This document shows positions 1 through 22,148 of a DNA stretch of 22,148 bases, piece after piece. The stretch is from NCBI GenBank assembly GCA_002189035.1, contig NEEC01000193.1, positions 1-22,148 on the forward strand. The letters run 5' to 3'. The position numbers and the translations under genes were made by a program. Position 1 is the stretch's first letter; each line of letters opens with the position of its first letter. The notes under the pieces were generated by a model, which was not told the DNA's origin, made no database searches, and saw only the letters and a program-made list of their open reading frames with translations. Source of the stretch: Utricularia gibba (taxonomy: Eukaryota > Plantae > Magnoliophyta).

Positions 1-2084
1 AGTTGCTATGATACTTCTGATTCTTGATGCACCATTCCATACACCATGTTCTAGTGGCTATTTGATTCTTTTGCCGTGTATCCCATTTGCATCAATGTCG
101 AGAACGAGAAGCACATTCTTAGACGCAGCCACAAGAAAGGACACCTAAGACACTTTTCGTTGTGGCTTGTTTTTAATATGTCCAGTTATCGGACAAACGT
201 AACTCAAATATATACTTGGAGCTCGAAAAGGGCTTCCAACAGTGTGCTATGAAGAGCAAGGATCTGCATGTTATGCAAGAGGTGCTTCGCGGACCAGGAT
301 GTGCGACGTAGTCATTTCATTGCGCATCATCATTCGGGGTGCATCCTAAAAATCAACGTGCACGGGATTCATTAAAAAAAAATATTTACGCATATCCAGA
401 GTGTATAACAGTGTTGGGATAAGTGATGCACGAAATTCATGATGTAGCATGTGACTTTTTTCCAACTTGATCGATAGTAGATGAATTCTGACACCATATG
501 TTGATGCATTTAGTTGCTATGATACTTCTGATTCTTGATGCACCATTCCCGTATACCATGTCTCTAGTGGCTATTTGATTCTTTTGCCTTGTATGTTGTT
601 CGCATCAATTTCGAGAACATGAAGCACATTATTAAATGCAGTCACCACGGAATGCACGTGAGACACCTTTCGTTGTGGCCCTTTTTTAATATGTCCACAG
701 TTATCGGACAAACGTAACTCAAATTATAATACTTGGAGCTCGAAAAGGGCTTCCCAACAGTGTGCTATGAAGAGCAAGGATGCATGTTATGCAAGAGGTG
801 TTTCGCGGACAGGATGTGCGACGTAGTCATTTCATTGCGCATCACCATTCGGGATGCAGCCGAAAAATACACGTGCACCGGATTTGTTAAAAATAAATAT
901 TTACGCATATCCTGAGTATACAACAGTGTTGGGATAAGTGATGCCACGAAATTCATGATGTAACATGTGACTTTTTCCATCTTGATCGCATATCGATGAA
1001 GTTTGACACCATATGTTTTGGCTGTTGATTGATTCAATTAGTTGCTATGATACTTCTGATTCTTGATGCACCATTCCCATACACCATGTCTCTAGTGGCT
1101 ATTTGATTCTTTTGCCGTGTATCCCATTTGCATCAATGTCGAGAACGAGAAGCACATTCTTAGACGCAGCCACCAAGAAAGGACACCTAAGACACTTTTC
1201 GTTGTGGCTTGTTTTTAATATGTCCACAGTTATCGGACAAACGTAACTCCAAATTATAATACTTGGAGCTCGAAAAGGGCTTCCAACAGTGTGCTATGAA
1301 GAGCAAGGATCTGCATGTTATGCAAGAGGTGCTTCGCGGACCAGGATGTGCGACGTAGTCATTTCATTGCGCATCATCATTCGGGGTGCATCTAAAAATC
1401 ACACGTGCACGGGATTCATTAAAAATAAATATTTACGCATATCCAGAGTGTATAACAGTGTTGGGATAAGTGATGCACGAAATTCATGATGTAGCATGTG
1501 ACTTTTTTCCAACTTGATCGCATAGTAGATGAATTCTGACACCATATGTTGATGCATTTAGTTGCTATGATACTTCTGATTCTTGATGCACATTCCCGTA
1601 TACCATGTCTCTAGTGGCTATTTGATTCTTTTGCCTTGTATGTTGTTCGCATCAATTTCGAGAACATGAAGCACATTATTAAATGCAGTCACCACGGAAT
1701 GCACGTGAGACACTTTCGTTGTGGCCTTTTTTAATATGTCCACAGTTATCGGAAAAACGTAACTCCAAATTATAATACTTGGAGCTCGAAAAGGGCTTCC
1801 CAACAGTGTGCTATGAAGAGCAAGGATCTGCATGTTATGCAAGAGGTGTTTCGCGGCCAGGATGTGCGACGTAGTCATTTCATTGCGCATCACATTCGGG
1901 TGCATCCAAAAATCACACGTGCACGGATTTGTTAAAAATAAATATTTACGCATATCGAGTGTACAACAGTGTTGGGATAAGTGATGCCACGAAATTCATG
2001 ATGTAACATGTGACTTTTTTCCATCTTGATCGCATATCCGATGAAGTTTGACACCATATGTTTTGGCTGTTGATTGATTCAATT

Positions 2085-2613
2085 AGTTGCTATGATACTT
2101 CTGATTCTTGATGCACCATTCCCATACACATGTCTCTAGTGGCTATTTGATTCTTTTGCCGTGTATCTTTGCATCAATGTCGAGAACGAGAAGCACATTC
2201 TTAGACGCAGCCACCAAGAAAGGACACCTAAGACACTTTTCGTTGTGGCTTGTTTTTTTAATATGTCCACAGTTATCGGACAAACGTAACTCCAAATTAT
2301 AATACTTGGAGCTCGAAAAGGGCTTCCCAACAGTGTGCTATGAAGAGCAAGGATCTGCATGTTATGCAAGAGGTGCTTCGCGGACCAGGATGTGCGACGT
2401 AGTCATTTCATTGCGCATCATCATTCGGGTGCATCCTAAAACACACGTGCACGGGATTCATTAAAAATAAATATTTACGCATATCGAGTGTATAACAGTG
2501 TTGGGATAAGTGATGCCACGAAATTCATGATGTAACATGTGACTTTTTTCCATCTTGATCGCATATCCGATGAAGTTTGACACCATATGTTTTGGCTGTT
2601 GATTGATTCAATT
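2085..2613 (+). repeat. Chimeric monomer with A head and B tail; breaks the AB alternation
   Basis: A-diagnostic bases run through 2493 (GAGTGTATAAC) and B-diagnostic bases start at 2535 (GTAAC, CCATC, ATCCGATGAAGTTTG, long tail). Another A head follows at 2614. Confidence 0.85.
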
Positions 2614-5600
2614 AGTTGCTATGATACTTCTGATTCTTGATGCACCATTCCCATACACCATGTCTCTAGTGGCTATTTGATTCTTTTGCCGTGTATCCCA
2701 TTTGCATCAATGTCGAGAACGAGAAGCACATTCTTAGACGCAGCCACCAAGAAAGGACACCTAAGACACTTTTCGTTGTGGCTTGTTTTAATATGTCCAC
2801 AGTTATCGGACAAAGTAACTCCAAATTATAATACTTGGAGCTCGAAAAGGGCTTCCCAACAGTGTGCTATGAAGAGCAAGGATCTGCATGTTATGCAAGA
2901 GGTGCTTCGCGGACCAGGATGTGCGACGTAGTCATTTCATTGCGCATCATCATTCGGGGTGCATCCTAAAAATCACACGTGCACGGGATTCATTAAAAAT
3001 AAATATTTACGCATATCCAGAGTGTATAACAGTGTTGGGATAAGTGATGCCACGAAATTCATGATGTAGCATGTGACTTTTTTCCAACTTGATCGCATAG
3101 TAGATGAATTCTGACACCATATGTTGATGCATTTAGTTGCTATGATACTTCTGATTCTTGATGCACCATTCCCGTATACCATGTCTCTAGTGGCTATTTG
3201 ATTCTTTTGCCTTGTATGTTGTTCGCATCAATTTCGAGAACATGAAGCACATTATTAAATGCAGTCACCACGGAATGCCACGTGAGACACTTTCGTTGTG
3301 GCCCTTTTTAATATGTCCACAGTTATCGGACAAACGTAACTCCAAATTATAATACTTGGAGCTCGAAAAGGGCTTCCAACAGTGTGCTATGAAGAGCAAG
3401 GATCTGCATGTTATGCAAGAGGTGTTTCGCGGACCAGGATGTGCGACGTAGTCATTTCATTGCGCATCACCATTCGGGATGCAGCCGAAAAATCACGTGC
3501 ACCGGATTTGTTAAAAATAAATATTTACGCATATCCTGAGTATACAACAGTGTTGGGATAAGTGATGCCACGAAATTCATGATGTAACATGTGACTTTTT
3601 TCCATCTTGATCGCATATCCGATGAAGTTTGACACCATATGTTTTGGCTGTTGATTGATTCAATTAGTTGCTATGATACTTCTGATTCTTGATGCACCAT
3701 TCCATACACCATGTCTCTAGTGGCTATTTGATTCTTTTGCCGTGTATCCCATTTGCATCAATGTCGAGAACGAGAAGCACATTCTTAGACGCAGCCACCA
3801 AGAAAGGACACCTAAGACACTTTTCGTTGTGGCTTGTTTTTAATATGTCCACAGTTATCGGACAAACGTAACTCCAAATTATAATACTTGGAGCTCGAAA
3901 AGGGCTTCCCAACAGTGTGCTATGAAGAGCAAGGATCTGCATGTTATGCAAGAGGTGCTTCGCGGACCAGGATGTGCGACGTAGTCATTTCATTGCGCAT
4001 CATCATTCGGGGTGCATCCTAAAAATCACACGTGCGGGATTCATTAAAAATAAATATTTACGCATATCCAGAGTGTATAACAGTGTTGGGATAAGTGATG
4101 CCACGAAATTCATGATGTAGCATGTGACTTTTTTCCAACTTGATCGCATAGTAGATGAATTCTGACACCATATGTTGATGCATTTAGTTGCTATGATACT
4201 TCTGATTCTTGATGCACCATTCCGTATACCATGTCTCTAGTGGCTATTTGATTCTTTTGCCTTGTATGTTGTTCGCATCAATTTCGAGAACATGAAGCAC
4301 ATTATTAAATGCAGTCACCACGGAATGCCACGTGAGACACTTTTCGTTGTGGCCTTTTTAATATGTCACAGTTATCGGACAAACGTAACTCCAAATTATA
4401 ATACTTGGAGCTCGAAAAGGGCTTCCCAACAGTGTGCTATGAAGAGCAAGGATCTGCATGTTATGCAAGAGGTGTTTCGCGACCAGGATGTGCGACGTAG
4501 TCATTTCATTGCGCATCACATTCGGGATGCAGCCGAAAAATCACACGTGCACCGGATTTGTTAAAAATAAATATTTACGCATATCCTGAGTATACAACAG
4601 TGTTGGGATAAGTGATGCCACGAAATTCATGATGTAACATGTGACTTTTTTCCATCTTGATCGCATATCGATGAAGTTTGACACCATATGTTTTGGCTGT
4701 TGATTGATTCAATTAGTTGCTATGATACTTCTGATTCTTGATGCACCATTCCCATACACCATGTCTCTAGTGGCTATTTGATTCTTTTGCCGTGTATCCC
4801 ATTTGCATCAATGTCGAGAACGAGAAGCACATTCTTAGACGCAGCCACCAAGAAAGGACACCTAAGACACTTTTCGTTGTGGCTTGTTTTTAATATGTCC
4901 ACAGTTATCGGACAAACGTAACTCCAAATTATAATACTTGGAGCTCGAAAAGGGCTTCCCAACAGTGTGCTATGAAGAGCAAGGATCTGCATGTTATGCA
5001 AGAGGTGCTTCGCGGACCAGGATGTGCGACGTAGTCATTTCATTGCGCATCATCATTCGGGGTGCATCCTAAAAATCACACGTGCACGGGATTCATTAAA
5101 AATAAATATTTACGCATATCCAGAGTGTATAACAGTGTTGGGATAAGTGATGCCACGAAATTCATGATGTAGCATGTGACTTTTTTCCAACTTGATCGCA
5201 TAGTAGATGAATTCTGACACCATATGTTGATGCATTTAGTTGCTATGATACTTCTGATTCTTGATGCACCATTCCCGTATACCATGTCTCTAGTGGCTAT
5301 TTGATTCTTTTGCCTTGTATGTTGTTCGCATCAATTTCGAGAACATGAAGCACATTATTAAATGCAGTCACCACGGAATGCCACGTGAGACACCTTTCGT
5401 TGTGGCCCTTTTTTAATATGTCCACAGTTATCGGACAAACGTAACTCCAAATTATAATACTTGGAGCTCGAAAAGGGCTTCCCAACAGTGTGCTATGAAG
5501 AGCAAGGATCTGCATGTTATGCAAGAGGTGTTTCGCGACCAGGATGTGCGACGTAGTCATTTCATTGCGCATCACCATTCGGGATGCAGCCGAAAAATCA

Positions 5601-7887
5601 CACGTGCACCGGATTTGTTAAAAATAAATATTTACGCATATCCTGAGTATAAACAGTGTTGGGATAAGTGATGCCACGAAATTCATGATGTAACATGTGA
5701 CTTTTTTCCATCTTGATCGCATATCCGATGAAGTTTGACACCATATGTTTTGGCTGTTGATTGATTCAATTAGTTGCTATGATACTTCTGATTCTTGATG
5801 CACCATTCCCATACACCATGTCTCTAGTGGCTATTTGATTCTTTTGCCGTGTATCCCATTTGCATCAATGTCGAGAACGAGAAGCACATTCTTAGACGCA
5901 GCCACCAAGAAAGGACACCTAAGACACTTTTCGTTGTGGCTTGTTTTTAATATGTCCACAGTTATCGGACAAACGTAACTCCAAATTATAATACTTGGAG
6001 CTCGAAAAGGGCTTCCCAACAGTGTGCTATGAAGAGCAAGGATCTGCATGTTATGCAAGAGGTGCTTCGCGGACCAGGATGTGCGACGTAGTCATTTCAT
6101 TGCGCATCATCATTCGGGGTGCATCCTAAAAATCACACGTGCACGGGATTCATTAAAAATAAATATTTACGCATATCCAGAGTGTATAACAGTGTTGGGA
6201 TAAGTGATGCCACGAAATTCATGATGTAGCATGTGACTTTTTTCCAACTTGATCGCATAGTAGATGAATTCTGACACCATATGTTGATGCATTTAGTTGC
6301 TATGATACTTCTGATTCTTGATGCACCATTCCCGTATACCATGTCTCTAGTGGCTATTTGATTCTTTTGCCTTGTATGTTGTTCGCATCAATTTCGAGAA
6401 CATGAAGCACATTATTAAATGCAGTCACCACGGAATGCCACGTGAGACACCTTTCGTTGTGGCCCTTTTTTAATATGTCCACAGTTATCGGACAAACGTA
6501 ACTCCAAATTATAATACTTGGAGCTCGAAAAGGGCTTCCCAACAGTGTGCTATGAAGAGCAAGGATCTGCATGTTATGCAAGAGGTGTTTCGCGGACCAG
6601 GATGTGCGACGTAGTCATTTCATTGCGCATCACATTCGGGATGCAGCCGAAAAATCACACGTGCACGGGATTTGTTAAAAATAAATATTTACGCATATCC
6701 TGAGTATACAACAGTGTTGGGATAAGTGATGCCACGAAATTCATGATGTAACATGTGACTTTTTTCCATCTTGATCGCATATCCGATGAAGTTTGACACC
6801 ATATGTTTTGGCTGTTGATTGATTCAATTAGTTGCTATGATACTTCTGATTCTTGATGCACCATTCCCATACACCATGTCTCTAGTGGCTATTTGATTCT
6901 TTTGCCGTGTATCCATTTGCATCAATGTCGAGAACGAGAAGCACATTCTTAGACGCAGCCACCAAGAAAGGACACCTAAGACACTTTTCGTTGTGGCTTG
7001 TTTTTAATATGTCCACAGTTATCGGACAAACGTAACTCCAAATTATAATACTTGGAGCTCGAAAAGGGCTTCCCAACAGTGTGCTATGAAGAGCAAGGAT
7101 CTGCATGTTATGCAAGAGGTGCTTCGCGGACCAGGATGTGCGACGTAGTCATTTCATTGCGCATCATCATTCGGGGTGCATCCTAAAAATCACACGTGCA
7201 CGGGATTCATTAAAAATAAATATTTACGCATATCCAGAGTGTATAACAGTGTTGGGATAAGTGATGCCACGAAATTCATGATGTAGCATGTGACTTTTTT
7301 CCAACTTGATCGCATAGTAGATGAATTCTGACACCATATGTTGATGCATTTAGTTGCTATGATACTTCTGATTCTTGATGCACCATTCCGTATACCATGT
7401 CTCTAGTGGCTATTTGATTCTTTTGCCTTGTATGTTGTTCGCATCAATTTCGAGAACATGAAGCACATTATTAAATGCAGTCACCACGGAATGCCACGTG
7501 AGACACCTTTCGTTGTGGCCCTTTTTTAATATGTCCACAGTTATCGGACAAACGTAACTCCAAATTATAATACTTGGAGCTCGAAAAGGGCTTCCCAACA
7601 GTGTGCTATGAAGAGCAAGGATCTGCATGTTATGCAAGAGGTGCTTCGCGGACCAGGATGTGCGACGTAGTCATTTCATTGCGCATCATCATTCGGGGTG
7701 CATCCTAAAAATCACACGTGCACCGGATTCATTAAAAATAAATATTTACGCATATCCAGAGTATAACAACAGTGTTGGGATAAGTGATGCCACGAAATTC
7801 ATGATGTAACATGTGACTTTTTTCCATCTTGATCGCATATCCGATGAAGTTTGACACCATATGTTTTGGCTGTTGATTGATTCAATT
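2614..7887 (+). repeat. Second regular (A+B)5 higher-order repeat domain
   Basis: A starts at 2614, 3666, 4715, 5772 and 6830 alternate with B starts at 3135, 4186, 5238, 6295 and 7352. Confidence 0.92.
7352..7887 (+). repeat. Mosaic B monomer carrying an internal A-type tract (about 7644-7758)
   Basis: Head and tail are B-type, but GTGCTTC, CATCATC, GGGGTG, CATCCTA, GATTCATT and CCAGA are A states. Only CACCGG is B-type within the tract. Confidence 0.8.
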
Positions 7888-8263
7888 AGTTGCTATGATA
7901 CTTCTGATTCTTGATGCACCATTCCCATACACCATGTCTCTAGTGGCTATTTGATTCTTTTGCCGTGTATCCCATTTGCATCAATGTCGAGAACGAGAAG
8001 CACATTCTTAGACGCAGCCACCAAGAAAGGACACCTAAGACACTTTTCGTTGTGGCTTGTTTTTAATATGTCCACAGTTATCGGACAAACGTAACTCCAA
8101 ATTATAATACTTGGAGCTCGAAAAGGGCTTCCCAACAGTGTGCTATGAAGAGCAAGGATCTGCATGTTATGCAAGAGGTGCTTCGCGGACCAGGATGTGC
8201 GACGTAGTCATTTCATTGCGCATCATCATTCGGGGTGCATCCTAAAAATCACACGTGCACGGG

Positions 8264-11200
8264 CATATCCATGTATAACAATAAATATTTACATGCATAT
8301 CCAGATGTGTATAAGTTGCTATGATACTTCTGATTCTTGATGGATAAGTGTCCACGAAATTCATGATGTAGCCGTGTGACTTTTGTGCTATGTCTGCATG
8401 TTATGCAAGAGGTGCTTCGCGGACCAGGATGTGCGACGTAGTCATTTCATTGCGCATCATCATTCGATCCTAAAAATCACACGTGCACGGGATTCATTAA
8501 AAATAAATATTTACGCATATCCAGAGTGTATAACAGTGTTGGGATAAGTGATGCCACGAAATTCATGATGTTGTGATGCATTTGAGTTGCCTATACTTCT
8601 GATTCTTGATGCACCATTCCCGTATACCATGTCTCTAGTGGCTATTTGATTCTTTTGCCTTGTATGTTGTTCGCATCAATTTCGAGAACATGAAGCACAT
8701 TATTAAATGCAGTCACCACGGAATGCACGTGAGACACTTTTCGTTGTGGCTTTTTTAATATGTCCACAGTTATCGGACAAACGTAACTCCAAATTATAAT
8801 ACTTGGAGCTCGAAAAGGGCAACAGTGTGCTATGAAGAGCAAGGATCTGCATGTTATGCAAGAGGTACCAGGATGTGCGACGTAGTCATTTCATTGCGCA
8901 TCACATTCGGGATGCAAAAAATCACACGTGCACCGGACGTCCAAATTCATGATGTAACATGTGACTTTTCCATCTTGATCGCATATCCGAAAGTTGGGAC
9001 CAAGTGTGGCTATGAACGAAATTCTGTTTAACTGTGGCTTTCCCAATGACACATGCTATACGTCATTTCATTGCGCATCATCATTCGGATGTGCATCGCA
9101 TAGAGGTGCTTCGTGCCGATTATCCCGATCAATGTACATTCTTGATGCATTGAGTGGCTATTTGAATCATTCATTGTCGAGATTCTTAGACGCAGCCACC
9201 AAGAAAGGACACCTAAGACACTTTTCGTTGTGGCTTGTTTTAATATGTCCACAGTTATCGGACAAACGTAACTCCAAATTATAATACTTGGAGCTCGAAA
9301 AGGGCTTCCCAACAGTGTGCTATGAAGAGCAAGGATCTGCATGTTATGCAAGAGGTGCTTCGCGGACCAGGATGTGCGACGTAGTCATTTCATTGCGCAT
9401 CATCATTCGGGGTGCATCCTAAAAATCACACGTGCACGGGATTCATTAAAAATAAATATTTACGCATATCCAGAGTGTATAACAGTGTTGGGATAAGTGA
9501 TGCCACGAAATTCATGATGTAGCATGTGACTTTTTTCCAACTTGATCGCATAGTAGATGAATTCTGACACCATATGTTGATGCATTTAGTTGCTATGATA
9601 CTTCTGATTCTTGATGCACCATTCCCGTATACCATGTCTCTAGTGGCTATTTGATTCTTTTGCCTTGTATGTTGTTCGCATCAATTTCGAGAACATGAAG
9701 CACATTATTAAATGCAGTCACCACGGAATGCCACGTGAGACACCTTTCGTTGTGGCCCTTTTTTAATATGTCCACAGTTATCGGACAAACGTAACTCCAA
9801 ATTATAATACTTGGAGCTCGAAAAGGGCTTCCCAACAGTGTGCTATGAAGAGCAAGGATCTGCATGTTATGCAAGAGGTGCTTCGCGGACCAGGATGTGC
9901 GACGTAGTCATTTCATTGCGCATCACCATTCGGGATGCAGCCGAAAAATCACACGTGCACGGATTTGTTAAAAATAAATATTTACGCATATCCTGAGTAT
10001 ACAACAGTGTTGGGATAAGTGATGCCACGAAATTCATGATGTAACATGTGACTTTTTTCCATCTTGATCGCATATCCGATGAAGTTTGACACCATATGTT
10101 TTGGCTGTTGATTGATTCAATTAGTTGCTATGATACTTCTGATTCTTGATGCACCATTCCCATACACCATGTCTCTAGTGGCTATTTGATTCTTTTGCCG
10201 TGTATCCCATTTGCATCAATGTCGAGAACGAGAAGCACATTCTTAGACGCAGCCACCAAGAAAGGACACCTAAGACACTTTTCGTTGTGGCTTGTCCACA
10301 GTTATCGGACAAACGTAACTCCAAATTATAATACTTGGAGCTCGAAAAGGGCTTCCCAACAGTGTGCTATGAAGAGCAAGGATCTGCATGTTATGCAAGA
10401 GGTGCTTCGCGGACCAGGATGTGCGACGTAGTCATTTCATTGCGCATCATCATTCGGGGTGCATCCACTTGGAGCGTGCGAAAAGGGCTTCCCAACAGTG
10501 TGCGCATAGAGAGTGTAGATCTGCATGTTATGTGACTTTCGCCCACCGGAGGATGTAACAGTGTGCTATGACTATGTTATGCATTTCATTGCGACGTAGT
10601 CATTTCATTGCGGGGTGCATCCTAAAAATCACACGTGCACGGGATTCATTAAAAATAAATATTTACGCATATCCAGAGTGTATAACAGTGTTGGGATAAG
10701 TGATGCCACGAAATTCATGATGTAACATGTGACTTTTTTCCATCTTGATCGCATATCCGATGAAGTTTGACGATTGATTCAATTAGTTGCTATGATACTT
10801 CTGATTCTTGATGCACCATTCCCATACACCATGTCTCTAGTGGCTATTTGATTCTTTTGCCGTGTATCCCATTTGCATCAATGTCGAGAACGAGAAGCAC
10901 ATTCTTAGACGCATAAGACACTTAGTTGTAACTCTGGAGCTCGACTTCTATGTCTGCATGTTATGCACTTATTGCGACGTAGTGATCATCATTCGGGGTG
11001 CATGTGCTGCATGAGTGTATAACACTTCCCCAACTTGATATAGTAGCACCATATGTCATCTAGATACTTCTGAGATGGTGTGGCTATTTGCTTTTGCCTT
11101 GTATGTTGTTCATGCATGAAGCAGCAGTCACCACGGAATGCCACTGAGAGCGGTTATCGTAACTCCAAATTATAATACTTGGAGCTCGAAAAGGGCTTCC

Positions 11201-12320
11201 CAACAGTGTGCTATGAAGAGCAAGGATCTGCATGTTATGCAAGAGGTGCTTCGCGGACCAGGATGTGCGACGTAGTCATTTCATTGCGCATCATCATTCG
11301 GGTGCAGCCTAAAAATCACACGTGCACGGGATTCATTAAAAATAAATATTTACGCATATCCAGAGTTATAACAGTGTTGGGATAAGTGATGCCACGAAAT
11401 TCATGATGTAACATGTGACTTTTTTCCATCTTGATCGCATATCCGATGAAGTTTGACACCATATGTTTTGGCTGTTGATTGATTCAATTAGTTGCTATGA
11501 TACTTCTGATTCTTGATGCACCATTCCATACACCATGTCTCTAGTGGCTATTTGATTCTTTTGCCGTGTATCCCATTTGCATCAATGTCGAGAACGAGAA
11601 GCACATTCTTAGACGCAGCCACCAAGAAAGGACACCTAAGACACTTTTCGTTGTGGCTTGTTTTTAATATGTCACAGTTATCGGACAAACGTGGAGCTTT
11701 CCCAACAGTGTGCTATGAAGAGCAAGGATCTGCATGTTATGCAAGAGGTGCTTCGCGGACCAGGATGTGCGACGTAGTCATTTCATTGCGCATCATCATT
11801 CGGATGTGCATCCTAGCCACACGTGCACGGCCATTAATGTAAAAACGATATCAGAGTGTATATACGGATAAGTGATGCCACGAAATATGATGTGATGTGG
11901 TTTTCACTCCGCATTTATCGATTATCTGAAGTTTGACACCATATGTTTTGGCTGTTGATTGATTCAATTAGTTGCTATGATACTTCTGATTCTTGATGCA
12001 CCATTCCCATACACCATGTCTCTAGTGGCTATTTGATTCTTTTGCCGTGTATCCCATTTGCATCAATGTCGAGAACGAGAAGCACATTCTTAGACGCAGC
12101 ACCAAGAAAGGACACCTAAGACACTTTTCGTTGTGGCTTGTTTTTAAGTCCTGTTATGTCATGGCACTTCGTAAGTCATTTCAATCATCATTATCCTAAT
12201 CACACGTTGGAGCAGTCGAAAAGGCTTCCCAACAGTGATGCTATGAAGAGCACGGATCTGCATGTTATGTTGTGCTTCGCGGACCAGGATCTGATTATGT
12301 CATTTCGTTGCGACGTATCA
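8264..12320. other. Disordered zone: intact monomers interspersed with scrambled, duplicated or compressed satellite fragments
   Basis: Irregular segments lie at 8264-8590, 8820-9183, 10467-10610, 10914-11157, 11690-11928 and 12148-12320. They are built mostly from recognisable satellite words. Monomer spacings here are 697, 662, 480 and 549 bp instead of 523/536. Confidence 0.85.
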
Positions 12321-14214
12321 TCATTGCGCATCATCATTCGGGGTGCATCCTAAAAATCACACGTGCACGGGATTCATTAAAAATAAATATTTACGCATAT
12401 CCAGAGTGTATAACAGTGTTGGGATAAGTGATGCCACGAAATTCATGATGTAGCATGTGACTTTTTTCCAACTTGATCGCATAGTAGATGAATTCTGACA
12501 CCATATGTTGATGCATTTAGTTGCTATGATACTTCTGATTCTTGATGCACCATTCCCGTATACCATGTCTCTAGTGGCTATTTGATTCTTTTGCCTTGTA
12601 TGTTGTTCGCATCAATTTCGAGAACATGAAGCACATTATTAAATGCAGTCACCACGGAATGCACGTGAGACACCTTTCGTTGTGGCCCTTTTTTAATATG
12701 TCCACAGTTATCGGACAAACGTAACTCCAAATTATAATACTTGGAGCTCGAAAAGGGCTTCCCAACAGTGTGCTATGAAGAGCAAGGATCTGCATGTTAT
12801 GCAAGAGGTGTTTCGCGGACCAGGATGTGCGACGTAGTCATTTCATTGCGCATCACATTCGGGATGCAGCCGAAAAATCACACGTGCACCGGATTTGTTA
12901 AAAATAAATATTTACGCATATCCTGAGTATACAACAGTGTTGGGATAAGTGATGCCACGAAATTCATGATGTAACATGTGACTTTTTTCCATCTTGATCG
13001 CATATCCGATGAAGTTTGACACCATATGTTTTGGCTGTTGATTGATTCAATTAGTTGCTATGATACTTCTGATTCTTGATGCACCATTCCCATACACCAT
13101 GTCTCTAGTGGCTATTTGATTCTTTTGCCGTGTATCCCATTTGCATCAATGTCGAGAACGAGAAGCACATTCTTAGACGCAGCCACCAAGAAAGGACACC
13201 TAAGACACTTTTCGTTGTGGCTTGTTTTTAATATGTCCACAGTTATCGGACAAACGTAACTCCAAATTATAATACTTGGAGCTCGAAAAGGGCTTCCCAA
13301 CAGTGTGCTATGAAGAGCAAGGATCTGCATGTTATGCAAGAGGTGCTTCGCGGACCAGGATGTGCGACGTAGTCATTTCATTGCGCATCATCATTCGGGG
13401 TGCATCCTAAAAATCACACGTGCACGGGATTCATTAAAAATAAATATTTACGCATATCCAGAGTGTATAACAGTGTTGGGATAAGTGATGCACGAAATTC
13501 ATGATGTAGCATGTGACTTTTTTCCAACTTGATCGCATAGTAGATGAATTCTGACACCATATGTTGATGCATTTAGTTGCTATGATACTTCTGATTCTTG
13601 ATGCACCATTCCCGTATACCATGTCTCTAGTGGCTATTTGATTCTTTTGCCTTGTATGTTGTTCGCATCAATTTCGAGAACATGAAGCACATTATTAAAT
13701 GCAGTCACCGAATGCCACGTGAGACACCTTTCGTTGTGGCCCTTTTTTAATATGTCCACAGTTATCGGACAAACGTAACTCCAAATTATAATACTTGGAG
13801 CTCGAAAAGGGCTTCCCAACAGTGTGCTATGAAGAGCAAGGATCTGCATGTTATGCAAGAGGTGTTTCGGACCAGGATGTGCGACGTAGTCATTTCATTG
13901 CGCATCACATTCGGGTGCACCAAAAATCACACGTGCACGGATTGTTAAAAATAAATATTTACGCATATCCTGAGTATACAACAGTGTTGGGATAAGTGAT
14001 GCCACGAAATTCATGATGTAACATGTGACTTTTTTCCATCTTGATCGCATATCGATGAAGTTTGACACCATATGTTTTGGCTGTTGATTGATTCAATTAG
14101 TTGCTATGATACTTCTGATTCTTGATGCACCATTCCCATACACCATGTCTCTAGTGGCTATTTGATTCTTTTGCCGTGTATGCATCAATGTCGAGAACGA
14201 GAAGCACATTCTTA

Positions 14215-14293
14215 GTGCTTCGATTCACCACGGATCCCACGCATCAATGTCGATTCTCGTTTTTCGCCCTTATTTCCAAATTAAATACTTGTC
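14215..14293. other. Short scrambled segment replacing the middle of an A monomer
   Basis: The monomer at 14099-14576 is only 478 bp. The segment holds distorted fragments (CACCACGGA, GCATCAATGTCGA, TCCAAATT, AATACTTG). Confidence 0.75.
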
Positions 14294-17200
14294 GTTCCCA
14301 ACAGTGTGCTATGAAGAGCAAGGATCTGCATGTTATGCAAGAGGTGCTTCGCGGACCAGGATGTGCGACGTAGTCATTTCATTGCGCATCATCATTCGGG
14401 GTGCATCCTAAAAATCACACGTGCACGGGATTCATTAAAAATAAATATTTACGCATATCCAGAGTGTATAACAGTGTTGGGATAAGTGATGCCACGAAAT
14501 TCATGATGTAGCATGTGACTTTTTTCCAACTTGATCGCATAGTAGATGAATTCTGACACCATATGTTGATGCATTTAGTTGCTATGATACTTCTGATTCT
14601 TGATGCACCATTCCCGTATACCATGTCTCTAGTGGCTATTTGATTCTTTTGCCTTGTATGTTGTTCGCATCAATTTCGAGAACATGAAGCACATTATTAA
14701 ATGCAGTCACCACGGAATGCCACGTGAGACACCTTTCGTTGTGGCCCTTTTTTAATATGTCCACAGTTATCGGACAAACGTAACTCCAAATTATAATACT
14801 TGGAGCTCGAAAAGGGCTTCCCAACAGTGTGCTATGAAGAGCAAGGATCTGCATGTTATGCAAGAGGTGCTTCGCGGACCAGGATGTGCGACGTAGTCAT
14901 TTCATTGCGCATCACCATTCGGGATGCAGCCGAAAAATCACACGTGCACCGGATTTGTTAAAAATAAATATTTACGCATATCCTGAGTATACAACAGTGT
15001 TGGGATAAGTGATGCCACGAAATTCATGATGTAACATGTGACTTTTTTCCATCTTGATCGCATATCCGATGAAGTTTGACACCATATGTTTTGGCTGTTG
15101 ATTGATTCAATTAGTTGCTATGATACTTCTGATTCTTGATGCACCATTCCCATACACCATGTCTCTAGTGGCTATTTGATTCTTTTGCCGTGTATCCCAT
15201 TTGCATCAATGTCGAGAACGAGAAGCACATTCTTAGACGCAGCCACCAAGAAAGGACACCTAAGACACTTTTCGTTGTGGCTTGTTTTTAATATGTCCAC
15301 AGTTATCGGACAAACGTAACTCCAAATTATAATACTTGGAGCTCGAAAAGGGCTTCCCAACAGTGTGCTATGAAGAGCAAGGATCTGCATGTTATGCAAG
15401 AGGTGCTTCGCGGACCAGGATGTGCGACGTAGTCATTTCATTGCGCATCATCATTCGGGGTGCATCCTAAAAATCACACGTGCACGGGATTCATTAAAAA
15501 TAAATATTTACGCATATCCAGAGTGTATAACAGTGTTGGGATAAGTGATGCCACGAAATTCATGATGTAGCATGTGACTTTTTTCCAACTTGATCGCATA
15601 GTAGATGAATTCTGACACCATATGTTGATGCATTTAGTTGCTATGATACTTCTGATTCTTGATGCACCATTCCCGTATACCATGTCTCTAGTGGCTATTT
15701 GATTCTTTTGCCTTGTATGTTGTTCGCATCAATTTCGAGAACATGAAGCACATTATTAAATGCAGTCACCACGGAATGCCACGTGAGACACCTTTCGTTG
15801 TGGCCCTTTTTTAATATGTCCACAGTTATCGGACAAACGTAACTCCAAATTATAATACTTGGAGCTCGAAAAGGGCTTCCCAACAGTGTGCTATGAAGAG
15901 CAAGGATCTGCATGTTATGCAAGAGGTGCTTCGCGGACCAGGATGTGCGACGTAGTCATTTCATTGCGCATCACCATTCGGGATGCAGCCGAAAAATCAC
16001 ACGTGCACGGATTTGTTAAAAATAAATATTTACGCATATCCTGAGTATACAACAGTGTTGGGATAAGTGATGCCACGAAATTCATGATGTAACATGTGAC
16101 TTTTTTCCATCTTGATCGCATATCCGATGAAGTTTGACACCATATGTTTTGGCTGTTGATTGATTCAATTAGTTGCTATGATACTTCTGATTCTTGATGC
16201 ACCATTCCCATACACCATGTCTCTAGTGGCTATTTGATTCTTTTGCCGTGTATCCCATTTGCATCAATGTCGAGAACGAGAAGCACATTCTTAGACGCAG
16301 CCACCAAGAAAGGACACCTAAGACACTTTTCGTTGTGGCTTGTTTTTAATATGTCCACAGTTATCGGACAAACGTAACTCCAAATTATAATACTTGGAGC
16401 TCGAAAAGGGCTTCCCAACAGTGTGCTATGAAGAGCAAGGATCTGCATGTTATGCAAGAGGTGCTTCGCGGACCAGGATGTGCGACGTAGTCATTTCATT
16501 GCGCATCATCATTCGGGGTGCATCCTAAAAATCACACGTGCACGGGATTCATTAAAAATAAATATTTACGCATATCCAGAGTGTATAACAGTGTTGGGAT
16601 AAGTGATGCCACGAAATTCATGATGTAGCATGTGACTTTTTTCCAACTTGATCGCATAGTAGATGAATTCTGACACCATATGTTGATGCATTTAGTTGCT
16701 ATGATACTTCTGATTCTTGATGCACCATTCCCGTATACCATGTCTCTAGTGGCTATTTGATTCTTTTGCCTTGTATGTTGTTCGCATCAATTTCGAGAAC
16801 ATGAAGCACATTATTAAATGCAGTCACCACGGAATGCCACGTGAGACACCTTTCGTTGTGGCCCTTTTTTAATATGTCCACAGTTATCGGACAAACGTAA
16901 CTCCAAATTATAATACTTGGAGCTCGAAAAGGGCTTCCCAACAGTGTGCTATGAAGAGCAAGGATCTGCATGTTATGCAAGAGGTGTTTCGCGGACCAGG
17001 ATGTGCGACGTAGTCATTTCATTGCGCATCACCATTCGGGATGCATCCGAAAAATCACACGTGCACGGATTTGTTAAAAATAAATATTTACGCATATCCT
17101 GAGTATACAACAGTGTTGGGATAAGTGATGCCACGAAATTCATGATGTAACATGTGACTTTTTTCCATCTTGATCGCATATCCGATGAAGTTTGACACCA

Positions 17201-17435
17201 TATGTTTTGGCTGTTGATTGATTCAATTAGTTGCTATGATACTTCTGATTCTTGATGCACCATTCCCATACACCATGTCTCTAGTGGCTATTTGATTCTT
17301 TTGCCGTGTATCCCATTTGCATCAATGTCGAGAACGAGAAGCACATTCTTAGACGCAGCCACCAAGAAAGGACACCTAAGACACTTTTCGTTGTGGCTTG
17401 TTTTTAATATGTCCACAGTTATCGGACAAACGTAA

Positions 17436-17457
17436 CTCCAAATTATAATACTTGGAG
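17436..17457. other. Small inverted repeat CTCCAA-N10-TTGGAG, present once per monomer (positions 208-229)
   Basis: A perfect 6-bp stem with loop ATTATAATAC, identical in A and B. Function unknown. Confidence 0.5.
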
Positions 17458-17573
17458 CTCGAAAAGGGCTTCCCAACAGTGTGCTATGAAGAGCAAGGAT
17501 CTGCATGTTATGCAAGAGGTGCTTCGCGGACCAGGATGTGCGACGTAGTCATTTCATTGCGCATCATCATTCG

Positions 17574-17693
17574 GGGTGCATCCTAAAAATCACACGTGCA
17601 CGGGATTCATTAAAAATAAATATTTACGCATATCCAGAGTGTATAACAGTGTTGGGATAAGTGATGCCACGAAATTCATGATGTAGCATGTGA
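17574..17693 (+). pseudogene. Putative degenerate 5S rRNA-like segment in monomer A (present in every A copy)
   Basis: Starts with GGGTGC, the other common plant 5S start. It has TGCACGGGAT at 5S positions 24-33, the same box A/C remnants, TGTAGCAT against 5S TGTTGCAT at 109-116, and T6 at 17695-17700. Confidence 0.45.
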
Positions 17694-18096
17694 CTTTTTT
17701 CCAACTTGATCGCATAGTAGATGAATTCTGACACCATATGTTGATGCATTTAGTTGCTATGATACTTCTGATTCTTGATGCACCATTCCCGTATACCATG
17801 TCTCTAGTGGCTATTTGATTCTTTTGCCTTGTATGTTGTTCGCATCAATTTCGAGAACATGAAGCACATTATTAAATGCAGTCACCACGGAATGCCACGT
17901 GAGACACCTTTCGTTGTGGCCCTTTTTTAATATGTCCACAGTTATCGGACAAACGTAACTCCAAATTATAATACTTGGAGCTCGAAAAGGGCTTCCCAAC
18001 AGTGTGCTATGAAGAGCAAGGATCTGCATGTTATGCAAGAGGTGTTTCGCGGACCAGGATGTGCGACGTAGTCATTTCATTGCGCATCACCATTCG

Positions 18097-18216
18097 GGAT
18101 GCAGCCGAAAAATCACACGTGCACCGGATTTGTTAAAAATAAATATTTACGCATATCCTGAGTATACAACAGTGTTGGGATAAGTGATGCCACGAAATTC
18201 ATGATGTAACATGTGA
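18097..18216 (+). pseudogene. Putative degenerate 5S rRNA-like segment in monomer B (monomer positions 346-465; present in every B copy)
   Basis: Compared with the angiosperm 5S consensus recalled from memory: GGATGC at 5S positions 1-6, exact TGCACCGGAT at 24-33 with no gap, and 26/43 ungapped identity over the first 43 nt. Box A-like ATTTACGCATAT matches 7/12 and box C-like GGGATAAGTG matches 7/10. Overall identity is only about 50% with four 1-bp gaps, and 5S helix II is not retained. Confidence 0.5.
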
Positions 18217-18217
18217 C

Positions 18218-18223
18218 TTTTTT
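18218..18223 (+). terminator. T6 run at the position expected for an RNA polymerase III terminator of the 5S-like segment
   Basis: TTTTTT begins at +122 relative to the 5S-like start in both monomer types (monomer positions 467-472). The call depends on the 5S interpretation. Confidence 0.3.
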
Positions 18224-21200
18224 CCATCTTGATCGCATATCCGATGAAGTTTGACACCATATGTTTTGGCTGTTGATTGATTCAATTAGTTGCTATGATA
18301 CTTCTGATTCTTGATGCACCATTCCCATACACCATGTCTCTAGTGGCTATTTGATTCTTTTGCCGTGTATCCCATTTGCATCAATGTCGAGAACGAGAAG
18401 CACATTCTTAGACGCAGCCACCAAGAAAGGACACCTAAGACACTTTTCGTTGTGGCTTGTTTTAATATGTCCACAGTTATCGGACAAACGTAACTCCAAA
18501 TTATAATACTTGGAGCTCGAAAAGGGCTTCCCAACAGTGTGCTATGAAGAGCAAGGATCTGCATGTTATGCAAGAGGTGCTTCGCGGACCAGGATGTGCG
18601 ACGTAGTCATTTCATTGCGCATCATCATTCGGGGTGCATCCTAAAAATCACACGTGCACGGGATTCATTAAAAATAAATATTTACGCATATCCAGAGTGT
18701 ATAACAGTGTTGGGATAAGTGATGCCACGAAATTCATGATGTAGCATGTGACTTTTTTCCAACTTGATCGCATAGTAGATGAATTCTGACACCATATGTT
18801 GATGCATTTAGTTGCTATGATACTTCTGATTCTTGATGCACCATTCCCGTATACCATGTCTCTAGTGGCTATTTGATTCTTTTGCCTTGTATGTTGTTCG
18901 CATCAATTTCGAGAACATGAAGCACATTATTAAATGCAGTCACCACGGAATGCCACGTGAGACACCTTTCGTTGTGGCCCTTTTTTAATATGTCCACAGT
19001 TATCGGACAAACGTAACTCCAAATTATAATACTTGGAGCTCGAAAAGGGCTTCCCAACAGTGTGCTATGAAGAGCAAGGATCTGCATGTTATGCAAGAGG
19101 TGTTTCGCGGACCAGGATGTGCGACGTAGTCATTTCATTGCGCATCACCATTCGGGATGCATCCTAAAAATCACACGTGCACCGGATTTGTTAAAAATAA
19201 ATATTTACGCATATCCTGAGTATACAACAGTGTTGGGATAAGTGATGCCACGAAATTCATGATGTAACATGTGACTTTTTTCCATCTTGATCGCATATCC
19301 GATGAAGTTTGACACCATATGTTTTGGCTGTTGATTGATTCAATTAGTTGCTATGATACTTCTGATTCTTGATGCACCATTCCCATACACCATGTCTCTA
19401 GTGGCTATTTGATTCTTTTGCCGTGTATCCCATTTGCATCAATGTCGAGAACGAGAAGCACATTCTTAGACGCAGCCACCAAGAAAGGACACCTAAGACA
19501 CTTTTCGTTGTGGCTTGTTTTTAATATGTCCACAGTTATCGGACAAACGTAACTCCAAATTATAATACTTGGAGCTCGAAAAGGGCTTCCCAACAGTGTG
19601 CTATGAAGAGCAAGGATCTGCATGTTATGCAAGAGGTGCTTCGCGGACCAGGATGTGCGACGTAGTCATTTCATTGCGCATCATCATTCGGGGTGCATCC
19701 TAAAAATCACACGTGCACGGGATTCATTAAAAATAAATATTTACGCATATCCAGAGTGTATAACAGTGTTGGATAAGTGATGCCACGAAATTCATGATGT
19801 AGCATGTGACTTTTTTCCAACTTGATCGCATAGTAGATGAATTCTGACACCATATGTTGATGCATTTAGTTGCTATGATACTTCTGATTCTTGATGCACC
19901 ATTCCCGTATACCATGTCTCTAGTGGCTATTTGATTCTTTTGCCTTGTATGTTGTTCGCATCAATTTCGAGAACATGAAGCACATTATTAAATGCAGTCA
20001 CCACGGAATGCCACGTGAGACACCTTTCGTTGTGGCCCTTTTTTAATATGTCCACAGTTATCGGACAAACGTAACTCCAAATTATAATACTTGGAGCTCG
20101 AAAAGGGCTTCCCAACAGTGTGCTATGAAGAGCAAGGATCTGCATGTTATGCAAGAGGTGCTTCGCGGACCAGGATGTGCGACGTAGTCATTTCATTGCG
20201 CATCACCATTCGGGATGCAGCCGAAAAATCACACGTGCACCGGATTGTGTTAAAAATAAATATTTACGCATATCCTGAGTATAACAGTGTTGGATAAGTG
20301 ATGCCACGAAATTCATGATGTAACATGTGACTTTTTTCCATCTTGATCGCATATCCGATGAAGTTTGACACCATATGTTTTGGCTGTTGATTGATTCAAT
20401 TAGTTGCTATGATACTTCTGATTCTTGATGCACCATTCCCATACACCATGTCTCTAGTGGCTATTTGATTCTTTTGCCGTGTATCCCATTTGCATCAATG
20501 TCGAGAACGAGAAGCACATTCTTAGACGCAGCCACCAAGAAAGGACACCTAAGACACTTTTCGTTGTGGCTTGTTTTTAATATGTCCACAGTTATCGGAC
20601 AAACGTAACTCCAAATTATAATACTTGGAGCTCGAAAAGGGCTTCCCAACAGTGTGCTATGAAGAGCAAGGATCTGCATGTTATGCAAGAGGTGCTTCGC
20701 GGACCAGGATGTGCGACGTAGTCATTTCATTGCGCATCATCATTCGGGTGCATCCTAAAAATCACACGTGCACGGGATTCATTAAAAATAAATATTTACG
20801 CATATCCAGAGTGTATAACAGTGTTGGATAAGTGATGCCACGAAATTCATGATGTAGCATGTGACTTTTTTCCAACTTGATCGCATAGTAGATGAATTCT
20901 GACACCATATGTTGATGCATTTATGCTATGATACTTCTGATTCTTGATGCACCATTCCCGTATACCATGTCTCTAGTGGCTATTTGATTCTTTTGCCTTG
21001 TATGTTGTTCGCATCAATTTCGAGAACATGAAGCACATTATTAAATGCAGTCACCACGGAATGCCACGTGAGACACCTTTCGTTGTGGCCCTTTTTTAAT
21101 ATGTCCACAGTTATCGGACAAACGTAACTCCAAATTATAATACTTGGAGCTCGAAAAGGGCTTCCCAACAGTGTGCTATGAAGAGCAAGGATCTGCATGT

Positions 21201-22148
21201 TATGCAAGAGGTGTTTCGCGGACCAGGATGTGCGACGTAGTCATTTCATTGCGCATCACCATTCGGGATGCAGCCGAAAAATCACACGTGCACCGGATTT
21301 GTTAAAAATAAATATTTACGCATATCCTGAGTATACAACAGTGTTGGGATAAGTGATGCCACGAAATTCATGATGTAACATGTGACTTTTTTCCATCTTG
21401 ATCGCATATCCGATGAAGTTTGACACCATATGTTTTGGCTGTTGATTGATTCAATTAGTTGCTATGATACTTCTGATTCTTGATGCACCATTCCCATACA
21501 CCATGTCTCTAGTGGCTATTTGATTCTTTTGCCGTGTATCCCATTTGCATCAATGTCGAGAACGAGAAGCACATTCTTAGACGCAGCACCAAGAAAGGAC
21601 ACCTAAGACACTTTCGTTGTGGCTTGTTTTTAATATGTCCACAGTTATCGGACAAACGTAACTCCAAATTATAATACTTGGAGCTCGAAAAGGGCTTCCC
21701 AACAGTGTGCTATGAAGAGCAAGGATCTGCATGTTATGCAAGAGGTGCTTCGCGGACCAGGATGTGCGACGTAGTCATTTCATTGCGCATCATCATTCGG
21801 GGTGCATCCTAAAAATCACACGTGCACGGGATTCATTAAAAATAAATATTTACGCATATCCAGAGAGTGTATAACAGTGTTGGGATAAGTGATGCCACGA
21901 AATTCATGATGTAGCATGTGACTTTTTTCCAACTTGATCGCATAGTAGATGAATTCTGACACCATATGTTGATGCATTTAGTTGCTATGATACTTCTGAT
22001 TCTTGATGCACCATTCCCGTATACCATGTCTCTAGTGGCTATTTGATTCTTTTGCCTGTGTATGTTGTTCGCATCAATTTCGAGAACATGAAGCACATTA
22101 TTAAATGCAGTCACACGGAATGCCACGTGAGACACCTTTCGTTGTGGC

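Follow-up and report, generated by a model that had tools for sequence, protein, structure and literature searches.

What gave rise to the tandem array that occupies the whole of the 22,148-nt stretch of Utricularia gibba DNA analysed here (the window), and does its repeating unit carry the remains of a 5S rRNA gene? The array was defined by repeat search and blastn, and both uphold the dimeric tandem structure proposed in a preliminary description of this DNA, which had been made from the sequence letters. Monomers of two types, A and B, alternate to form a 1058-bp dimer; the alternation is mostly strict, and fully so from ~14.6 kb to the window end, with a single strand orientation for the entire 22-kb array. 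Identity between monomers of the same type is 98–100%, as against 89–92% between A and B, and the G+C content of the window is 41% throughout. The order of the two types is scrambled at 8384–9182 and 10466–11490, where partial monomers, internal deletions and misordered pieces are found, and short stretches at ~8995–9062 and 9088–9182 received no blastn assignment to a monomer. Tandem Repeats Finder returned zero rows for the array; the program is blind to it because its period limit is 500 bp, which the repeat unit exceeds.

The monomer itself offers few internal landmarks. Open reading frames in the window amount to noise of just 50–77 aa, with no coding remnant in the monomer, and no sub-repeats were found inside it. 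One weak 17-nt inverted repeat (82% complementary) pairs 17994–18010 in the upstream spacer with 18164–18180, between the box A-like and box C-like motifs considered below, and probably reflects chance. The feature that raises the question of origin is a 5S-like start motif present in 33 of the ~40 monomers, on the + strand every time. The coordinates of one representative B-type and one A-type copy are collected in Table 1.

Table 1. Satellite array, representative monomers and 5S-like features in the window.
Feature	Position	Strand	Remarks
Satellite array	1..22148	+	Fills the whole window; ~40 monomers, A 523 bp + B 535 bp
B-type monomer	17752..18286	+	535 bp, in the phase of the preliminary description; 98–100% identity to other B copies
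A-type monomer	18287..18809	+	523 bp; 89–92% identity to B
B-type 5S-like gene body	18097..18215	+	Colinear with 5S 1–119; 64 identities, 4 gap columns
A-type 5S-like gene body	18632..18750	+	66–67/119 identities
Box A-like dodecamer ATTTACGCATAT	18145..18156	+	Not beyond chance alone
Box C-like motif GGGATAAGTGATG	18177..18189	+	10/13 to RRRATRGGTRACY consensus (PMC7215508); at chance level as a pair with box A
T6 run after B-type body	18218..18223	+	2 bases past the body, where a Pol III terminator would lie
T6 run after A-type body	18753..18758	+	2 bases past the body

The preliminary description had taken this segment for a decayed 5S rRNA gene, with remnants of its promoter and its terminator in register, by comparison with a plant 5S reference. 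To check that reference we used real plant 5S genes from seven metagenome contigs, located by a probe that served for finding alone; Rfam verified the fetched genes at 112–116 bits. They begin with GGGTGC or GGATGC, followed after 17 nt by TGCACCGGAT, carry AGTTAAGCGTGC (box A) from position 50, (A/G)GGATGGGTG (box C) from position 80 and TGTTGCA from position 109, and are followed by a T-run 0–5 nt past the gene end. The reference is therefore correct in both its motifs and their offsets, since the real plant genes carry them. Real 5S units in this set are 326–1336 bp long, a range that includes the satellite unit of 523–535 bp. A scan of viral contigs for plant 5S sequences returned nothing.

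The motifs that had been reported in the satellite are likewise where they were said to be. The segment opens with GGATGC at 18097 in the B monomer and with GGGTGC at 18632 in the A monomer; TGCACCGGAT stands 17 nt past the hexamer in B, at the place where A carries TGCACGGGAT. The putative box A, ATTTACGCATAT (18145–18156), and the first ten letters of the putative box C, GGGATAAGTG (18177–18186), lie 32 nt apart from start to start, the 3′ motif TGTAACAT/TGTAGCAT begins at offset 109, and a run of six T residues is found at +122 in B (18218–18223). In both monomer types this run begins 2 nt past the aligned end of the gene body, and the chance of a run of at least five T residues starting in a given 10-nt stretch is 0.024. 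Letter by letter, ATTTACGCATAT agrees with AGTTAAGCGTGC at 7 of 12 positions, and at 8 of 12 in the gapped alignment. Aligned end to end with four gap columns, the segment as a whole is 54–57% identical to 5S (64–67 of 119 positions). A second GC-rich box C-like motif, ACCAGGATGTGCGAC, occurs at 18586–18602 and again at 18051–18067, ~45 nt upstream of each 5S-like start; it matches 11 of 15 positions of 5S 77–91, scores ~0 bits with the profile and is likely a chance resemblance.

Identity of this order is difficult terrain for the standard detectors. The preliminary description had named covariance-model and HMM searches as the means of checking its proposal, and this check largely failed, as Rfam, a plant-specific covariance model (CM) and nhmmer all passed over the site without reporting a 5S gene. 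Searches of the window, of one dimer and of the 161-nt segment alone against Rfam gave no RF00001 match either at the gathering threshold (38 bits) or at E ≤ 10. The E-values of these searches are multiplied by 4227 families, which makes the negative result weaker than it appears. The weak Rfam hits that were obtained (pan motif, a lncRNA) are noise. Ten real genes served to build two models, a plant 5S CM that takes over the Rfam structure and a profile based on sequence only. With filters off, the CM produced hits of 5–6 bits, none of them at the proposed place, and the site itself stays under ~5.5 bits. The best hits of the sequence-only profile in the window are the proposed segment, on the + strand and in 28 monomers, at just 1.8–5.5 bits; on a single dimer the two segments ranked first and second, with E-values of 0.055 for A (4.1 bits) and 0.28 for B. 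By comparison, 47 bits are obtained for a genuine decayed 5S copy of a real array and 18 bits for a 35-nt 5S fragment. With the --max option nhmmer found nothing on the real dimer, and some weak hit appeared in 12% of shuffles. The remainder of the monomer yielded no second 5S copy; the best local scores there, 11–14, come from short stretches.

Local scoring is powerless at 55% identity, and for this reason the full-length 5S sequence was scored colinearly against any place in the dimer, on both strands, and compared with dinucleotide shuffles. Under every scheme the best full-length place was one of the two gene bodies (18097–18215 or 18632–18750) on the + strand. With +1/−1 scoring and gap costs of −4/−1 the real dimer scored 1.0, as against −13.6 ± 2.7 in shuffles, a value reached by 2 of 10,000. 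Scoring tolerant of transitions gave the B-type body 25.2, compared with 5.5 ± 3.0 (reached by 1 of 10,000), and loose gaps gave 11.0, compared with 1.9 ± 2.4 (21 of 10,000). The result was the same when the 5S query was shuffled in place of the dimer; the weakest combination of query and scheme, with loose gaps, was equalled by 21 of 500 shuffles (~0.04). The scoring schemes were not fixed beforehand, and a tenfold correction places the gene-body p value at ~1e-3.

As natural controls, the dimer and the query were each reversed, and ~9 kb of spacer from real 5S arrays was scored; these behaved like shuffles. Two control spacers did score high, and both turned out to hold true 5S relics (L005 1274–1381 and L007 1175–1289, the latter on the minus strand), so the full-length statistic evidently detects real dead copies. 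These relics of real plant arrays, L005:1274–1381 (+) and L007:1175–1289 (−), fall below the Rfam gathering threshold and served as positive controls for the statistic; one is almost complete, with 80 of 119 identities, and the other is 5S in its first 33–35 nt alone. A further copy, L004:516–637 (−), has had its first ~35 nt swapped for unrelated sequence; it scores 46.7 bits with Rfam, and the profile matches positions 36–118 only.

The resemblance of the satellite segment is concentrated at its two ends. The 5′ part (5S 1–33), searched across the dimer, gives p values of 0.004–0.01, and the 3′ part (5S 79–119), searched in the 96 nt downstream, gives 0.003–0.02. The two lie in the correct order, 46 nt apart as against 45 in 5S. 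The intervening 5S 34–78, which contains box A, shows no similarity beyond chance. Full-length colinearity with 5S thus exceeds chance, whereas the pair of box A and box C alone does not.

That pair had been presented as the remnant of an internal promoter. Searched with the published consensus (PMC7215508) at a spacing of 15–25 nt, it is equalled by 214 of 400 shuffles, and promoter remnants therefore provide no evidence by themselves. Matches of 8/12 for box A, 7–8/17 for the intermediate element and 10/13 for box C fall short of an internal promoter. The fold has fared no better: 15–17 of the 34 consensus base pairs are still possible in the segment, compared with 32 in a real gene; in folding energy the segment has no advantage over shuffles (z +0.6 to +1.5), and its MFE shape is unlike 5S. 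Under the same folding a real 5S gene adopts the canonical Y. Of the hallmarks of a 5S rRNA gene, the oligo-T terminator is present, and the CM score, the three-helix junction and the internal promoter are lacking. The A and B types are 91.6% identical within the segment and 92.2% identical in the upstream spacer, an equality which indicates no extra constraint on the segment. The suggestion that some affinity for Pol III or TFIIIA has been retained is consequently not supported, given the lost fold and boxes at chance level. Judged from their sequence, the 5S-like segments would be dead copies, presumably inactive as Pol III genes at the present day.

The mismatches with 5S carry a signature of their own. 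Under scoring that does not favour transitions, these make up 46% of the mismatches, compared with an expected 34 ± 6.5%, a value reached in 55 of 1500 shuffles (p ~0.037). Changes from C to T and from G to A relative to 5S account for 34%, compared with 24% expected (53 of 1500 shuffles, p ~0.035). The T-run in register and the transition excess are both independent of the gene-body alignment p value. It had been suggested that the transitions reflect methylation decay. The excess of transitions agrees with this suggestion, but the expected depletion of CpG is not seen (observed/expected 0.91, with TG and CA enriched), and the methylation decay story is weakly supported. At neutral rates a divergence of ~45% would by estimate have taken tens of millions of years to accumulate, a long time for so uniform an array. 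The proposal of a decayed 5S unit accordingly draws its support from the full-length alignment, the T-run and the transition excess, and receives none from Rfam, the CM, nhmmer, the box pair or the fold.

Could the resemblance nevertheless be fortuitous? An unrelated AT-rich satellite might happen to carry GGRTGC, TGCACCGGAT, the GGGATAAGTGA motif and a T-run spaced as in 5S. The lack of any weighty CM or HMM hit, a dissimilar middle third of the gene and promoter boxes at chance level would all be in keeping with such a coincidence. The null distribution has a long tail, and 1 of 10,000 shuffles equalled the observed score. The segment was moreover singled out visually in a scan of very great extent, a selection that inflates how significant it looks; the scoring schemes were settled once the alignment had been seen; and ~45% divergence presupposes lengthy neutral evolution in an array that is so uniform. 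These considerations have to be set against an empirical p value of 1e-4 to 2e-3 for the gene body and, independent of it, against a T-run in register (0.024) and an excess of transitions (0.037). Coincidence would also have to supply two separate parts, each significant and both correctly ordered and spaced, and the natural controls score low unless they hold true 5S relics. We regard chance resemblance as an unlikely explanation, albeit the strongest of the competing ones, and consider that the segment is probably a true relic of a 5S gene.

A relic of this kind could have reached the satellite by another route, through a Cassandra-type TRIM bearing in its LTRs a 5S copy complete with promoter and terminator and amplified as tandem arrays of LTR and internal domain. 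A unit of this composition can measure ~0.5 kb, judging from the sizes of such elements, and a 5S copy diverged from the outset would shorten the decay time required. Cassandra arrays in which 5S-like units number 12 or more are documented in many plants (PMC7215508). The defining primer binding site should follow box C by 5–200 nt in the same orientation (PMC7215508), but TGGTATCAGAGC is absent from the whole window at up to two mismatches, a search of low power at this degree of decay, and at three mismatches it recurs only on the minus strand, opposite to the 5S-like segment. The strict box A and box C consensus is missed as well, by 3 + 3 mismatches, with a box spacing of 20 nt. A GAAAAGGG run at ~17983–17990 is, by eye, not followed by an LTR-like start. 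A Cassandra TRIM is thus the main biological rival to a 5S rDNA unit and the less likely of the two, a distinctly improbable source in our estimation. More remote still is the prospect that the 5S-like segments are functional today, either as Pol III units or as TFIIIA/TFIIIC sites shaping the chromatin of the array. The T6 run retained in both A and B types, the 10/13 match of the box C-like motif and the presence of satellite contigs in runs guessed to be RNA would fit such a role. The number of possible base pairs (15–17/34), the intermediate element (7–8/17), the box A (8/12), the shuffle-like folding energy and the A/B identity, which reveals no extra constraint (91.6% vs 92.2% in the upstream spacer), all speak against it. 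The contigs from the RNA runs are, besides, 355–568 nt long and extend across monomer joints, unlike 120-nt products, and DNA carry-over could account for them. It is very doubtful, to the same degree, that dead 5S copies recurring every 0.5 kb might recruit TFIIIA/TFIIIC in an 'extra TFIIIC'-like manner or feed siRNA production, so that the array would organise chromatin or accompany centromeres in a very small plant genome, the family having persisted for tens of millions of years in more than one species.

The reading that we favour over these alternatives is that the satellite goes back to a 5S rDNA unit. The array is long and arranged head to tail with one 5S-like segment per unit, as a 5S rDNA-derived satellite would be, and we lean towards the view that the satellite is an amplified dead 5S rDNA unit, in which every monomer keeps a full-length relic of the gene together with its terminator. 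The starting point would have been a 5S rDNA unit of ~0.5 kb, composed of gene and spacer. This unit would have lost its function and left the homogenisation that it shared with the working 5S arrays, after which it may have accumulated ~45% substitutions, mostly toward A/T. Later re-amplification by unequal exchange would then have produced the uniform A/B dimer array. What we infer from the present-day sequence is twofold: that the source was a 5S rDNA unit and not some other element carrying a 5S sequence, and that decay and amplification took place in this order.

Can relatives of the satellite trace this history further back? Runs labelled as four other organisms contain copies of the family that are 90–99% identical to the window, and two of these runs show the 1058-bp A/B dimer joint. 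The copies are too similar to the window to polarise the ancestor, and no less-decayed intermediate was found among the runs. One change, 18131 T>C, which organism C shares with type A, brings back a match to 5S; others do not. In run X15, position 18281 is joined to 17743, B end to B start, with a 539-bp period, which suggests a monomeric B–B arrangement in that organism. Satellite contigs of 355 and 568 nt (17690–18760) occur in runs X15 and X19, which bear two other organism labels and are guessed to be RNA; they cross monomer joints, consistent with read-through transcription or DNA carry-over. Comparison of the monomer with the spacers of seven unrelated plant 5S loci yielded nothing beyond words of 11–16 nt and is uninformative on origin either way. 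In the published literature we found no description of this 535-bp repeat: a search for named satellites led to an unrelated wheat paper, and searches combining Utricularia with 5S or satellites gave nothing.

Satellites derived from 5S rDNA have been documented in frogs, fishes, beetles and Plantago. The closest parallel is the satellite of the Plantago lagopus B chromosome, which is derived from 5S rDNA (Kumke et al. 2016, as cited in PMC6934454 and PMC12692304). It is likewise a plant satellite born of 5S rDNA and massively amplified in tandem, but its 5S origin was, to go by the title of that work, recognised outright, whereas the gene part of the repeat described here has ~55% identity and is invisible to Rfam. 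Among animal satellites, the PcP190 family of hyloid frogs has a unit region derived from the transcribed part of 5S, in the account given by PMC11675491, and the 5SHindIII satellite of the fish Hoplias malabaricus is described as having a 5S-derived region in its units. Both share with our array the arrangement in tandem units with a region derived from the 5S gene. The PcP190 unit, as described there, measures ~190 bp, with a conserved and clearly alignable 5S-like region of 120 bp; the present unit is 523/535 bp long and far more decayed, and its 5S part evolves no slower than the spacer.

Two further systems delimit the array from the side of elements with recognisable 5S sequences. The Cassandra TRIM arrays (PMC7215508) similarly contain one 5S-like segment and a terminator per unit, mimicking 5S rDNA; unlike them, the array in the window shows no primer binding site at up to two mismatches on the strand that should bear it, and its boxes A and C depart from the family consensus. 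With functional plant 5S arrays it has in common tandem units some hundreds of bp in length, a single gene-length 5S-like segment per unit, a T-run just behind that segment and a uniform orientation. In contrast to those arrays, its segments lie far below the 38-bit threshold, their structure is lost and their promoter boxes are degenerate.

The satellite of Utricularia gibba is thus probably a further member of a class, the 5S rDNA-derived satellites, that was already known from a few cases. If this origin is true, it would add another plant satellite born from 5S rDNA, one that is unusually old and eroded. It would imply no new kind of biology, and no function is indicated for the repeat. 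Such origins would escape annotation of the Rfam type and be recovered by the statistics of full-length (glocal) alignment, and recognising one here would help to explain how satellites have originated in this genome.
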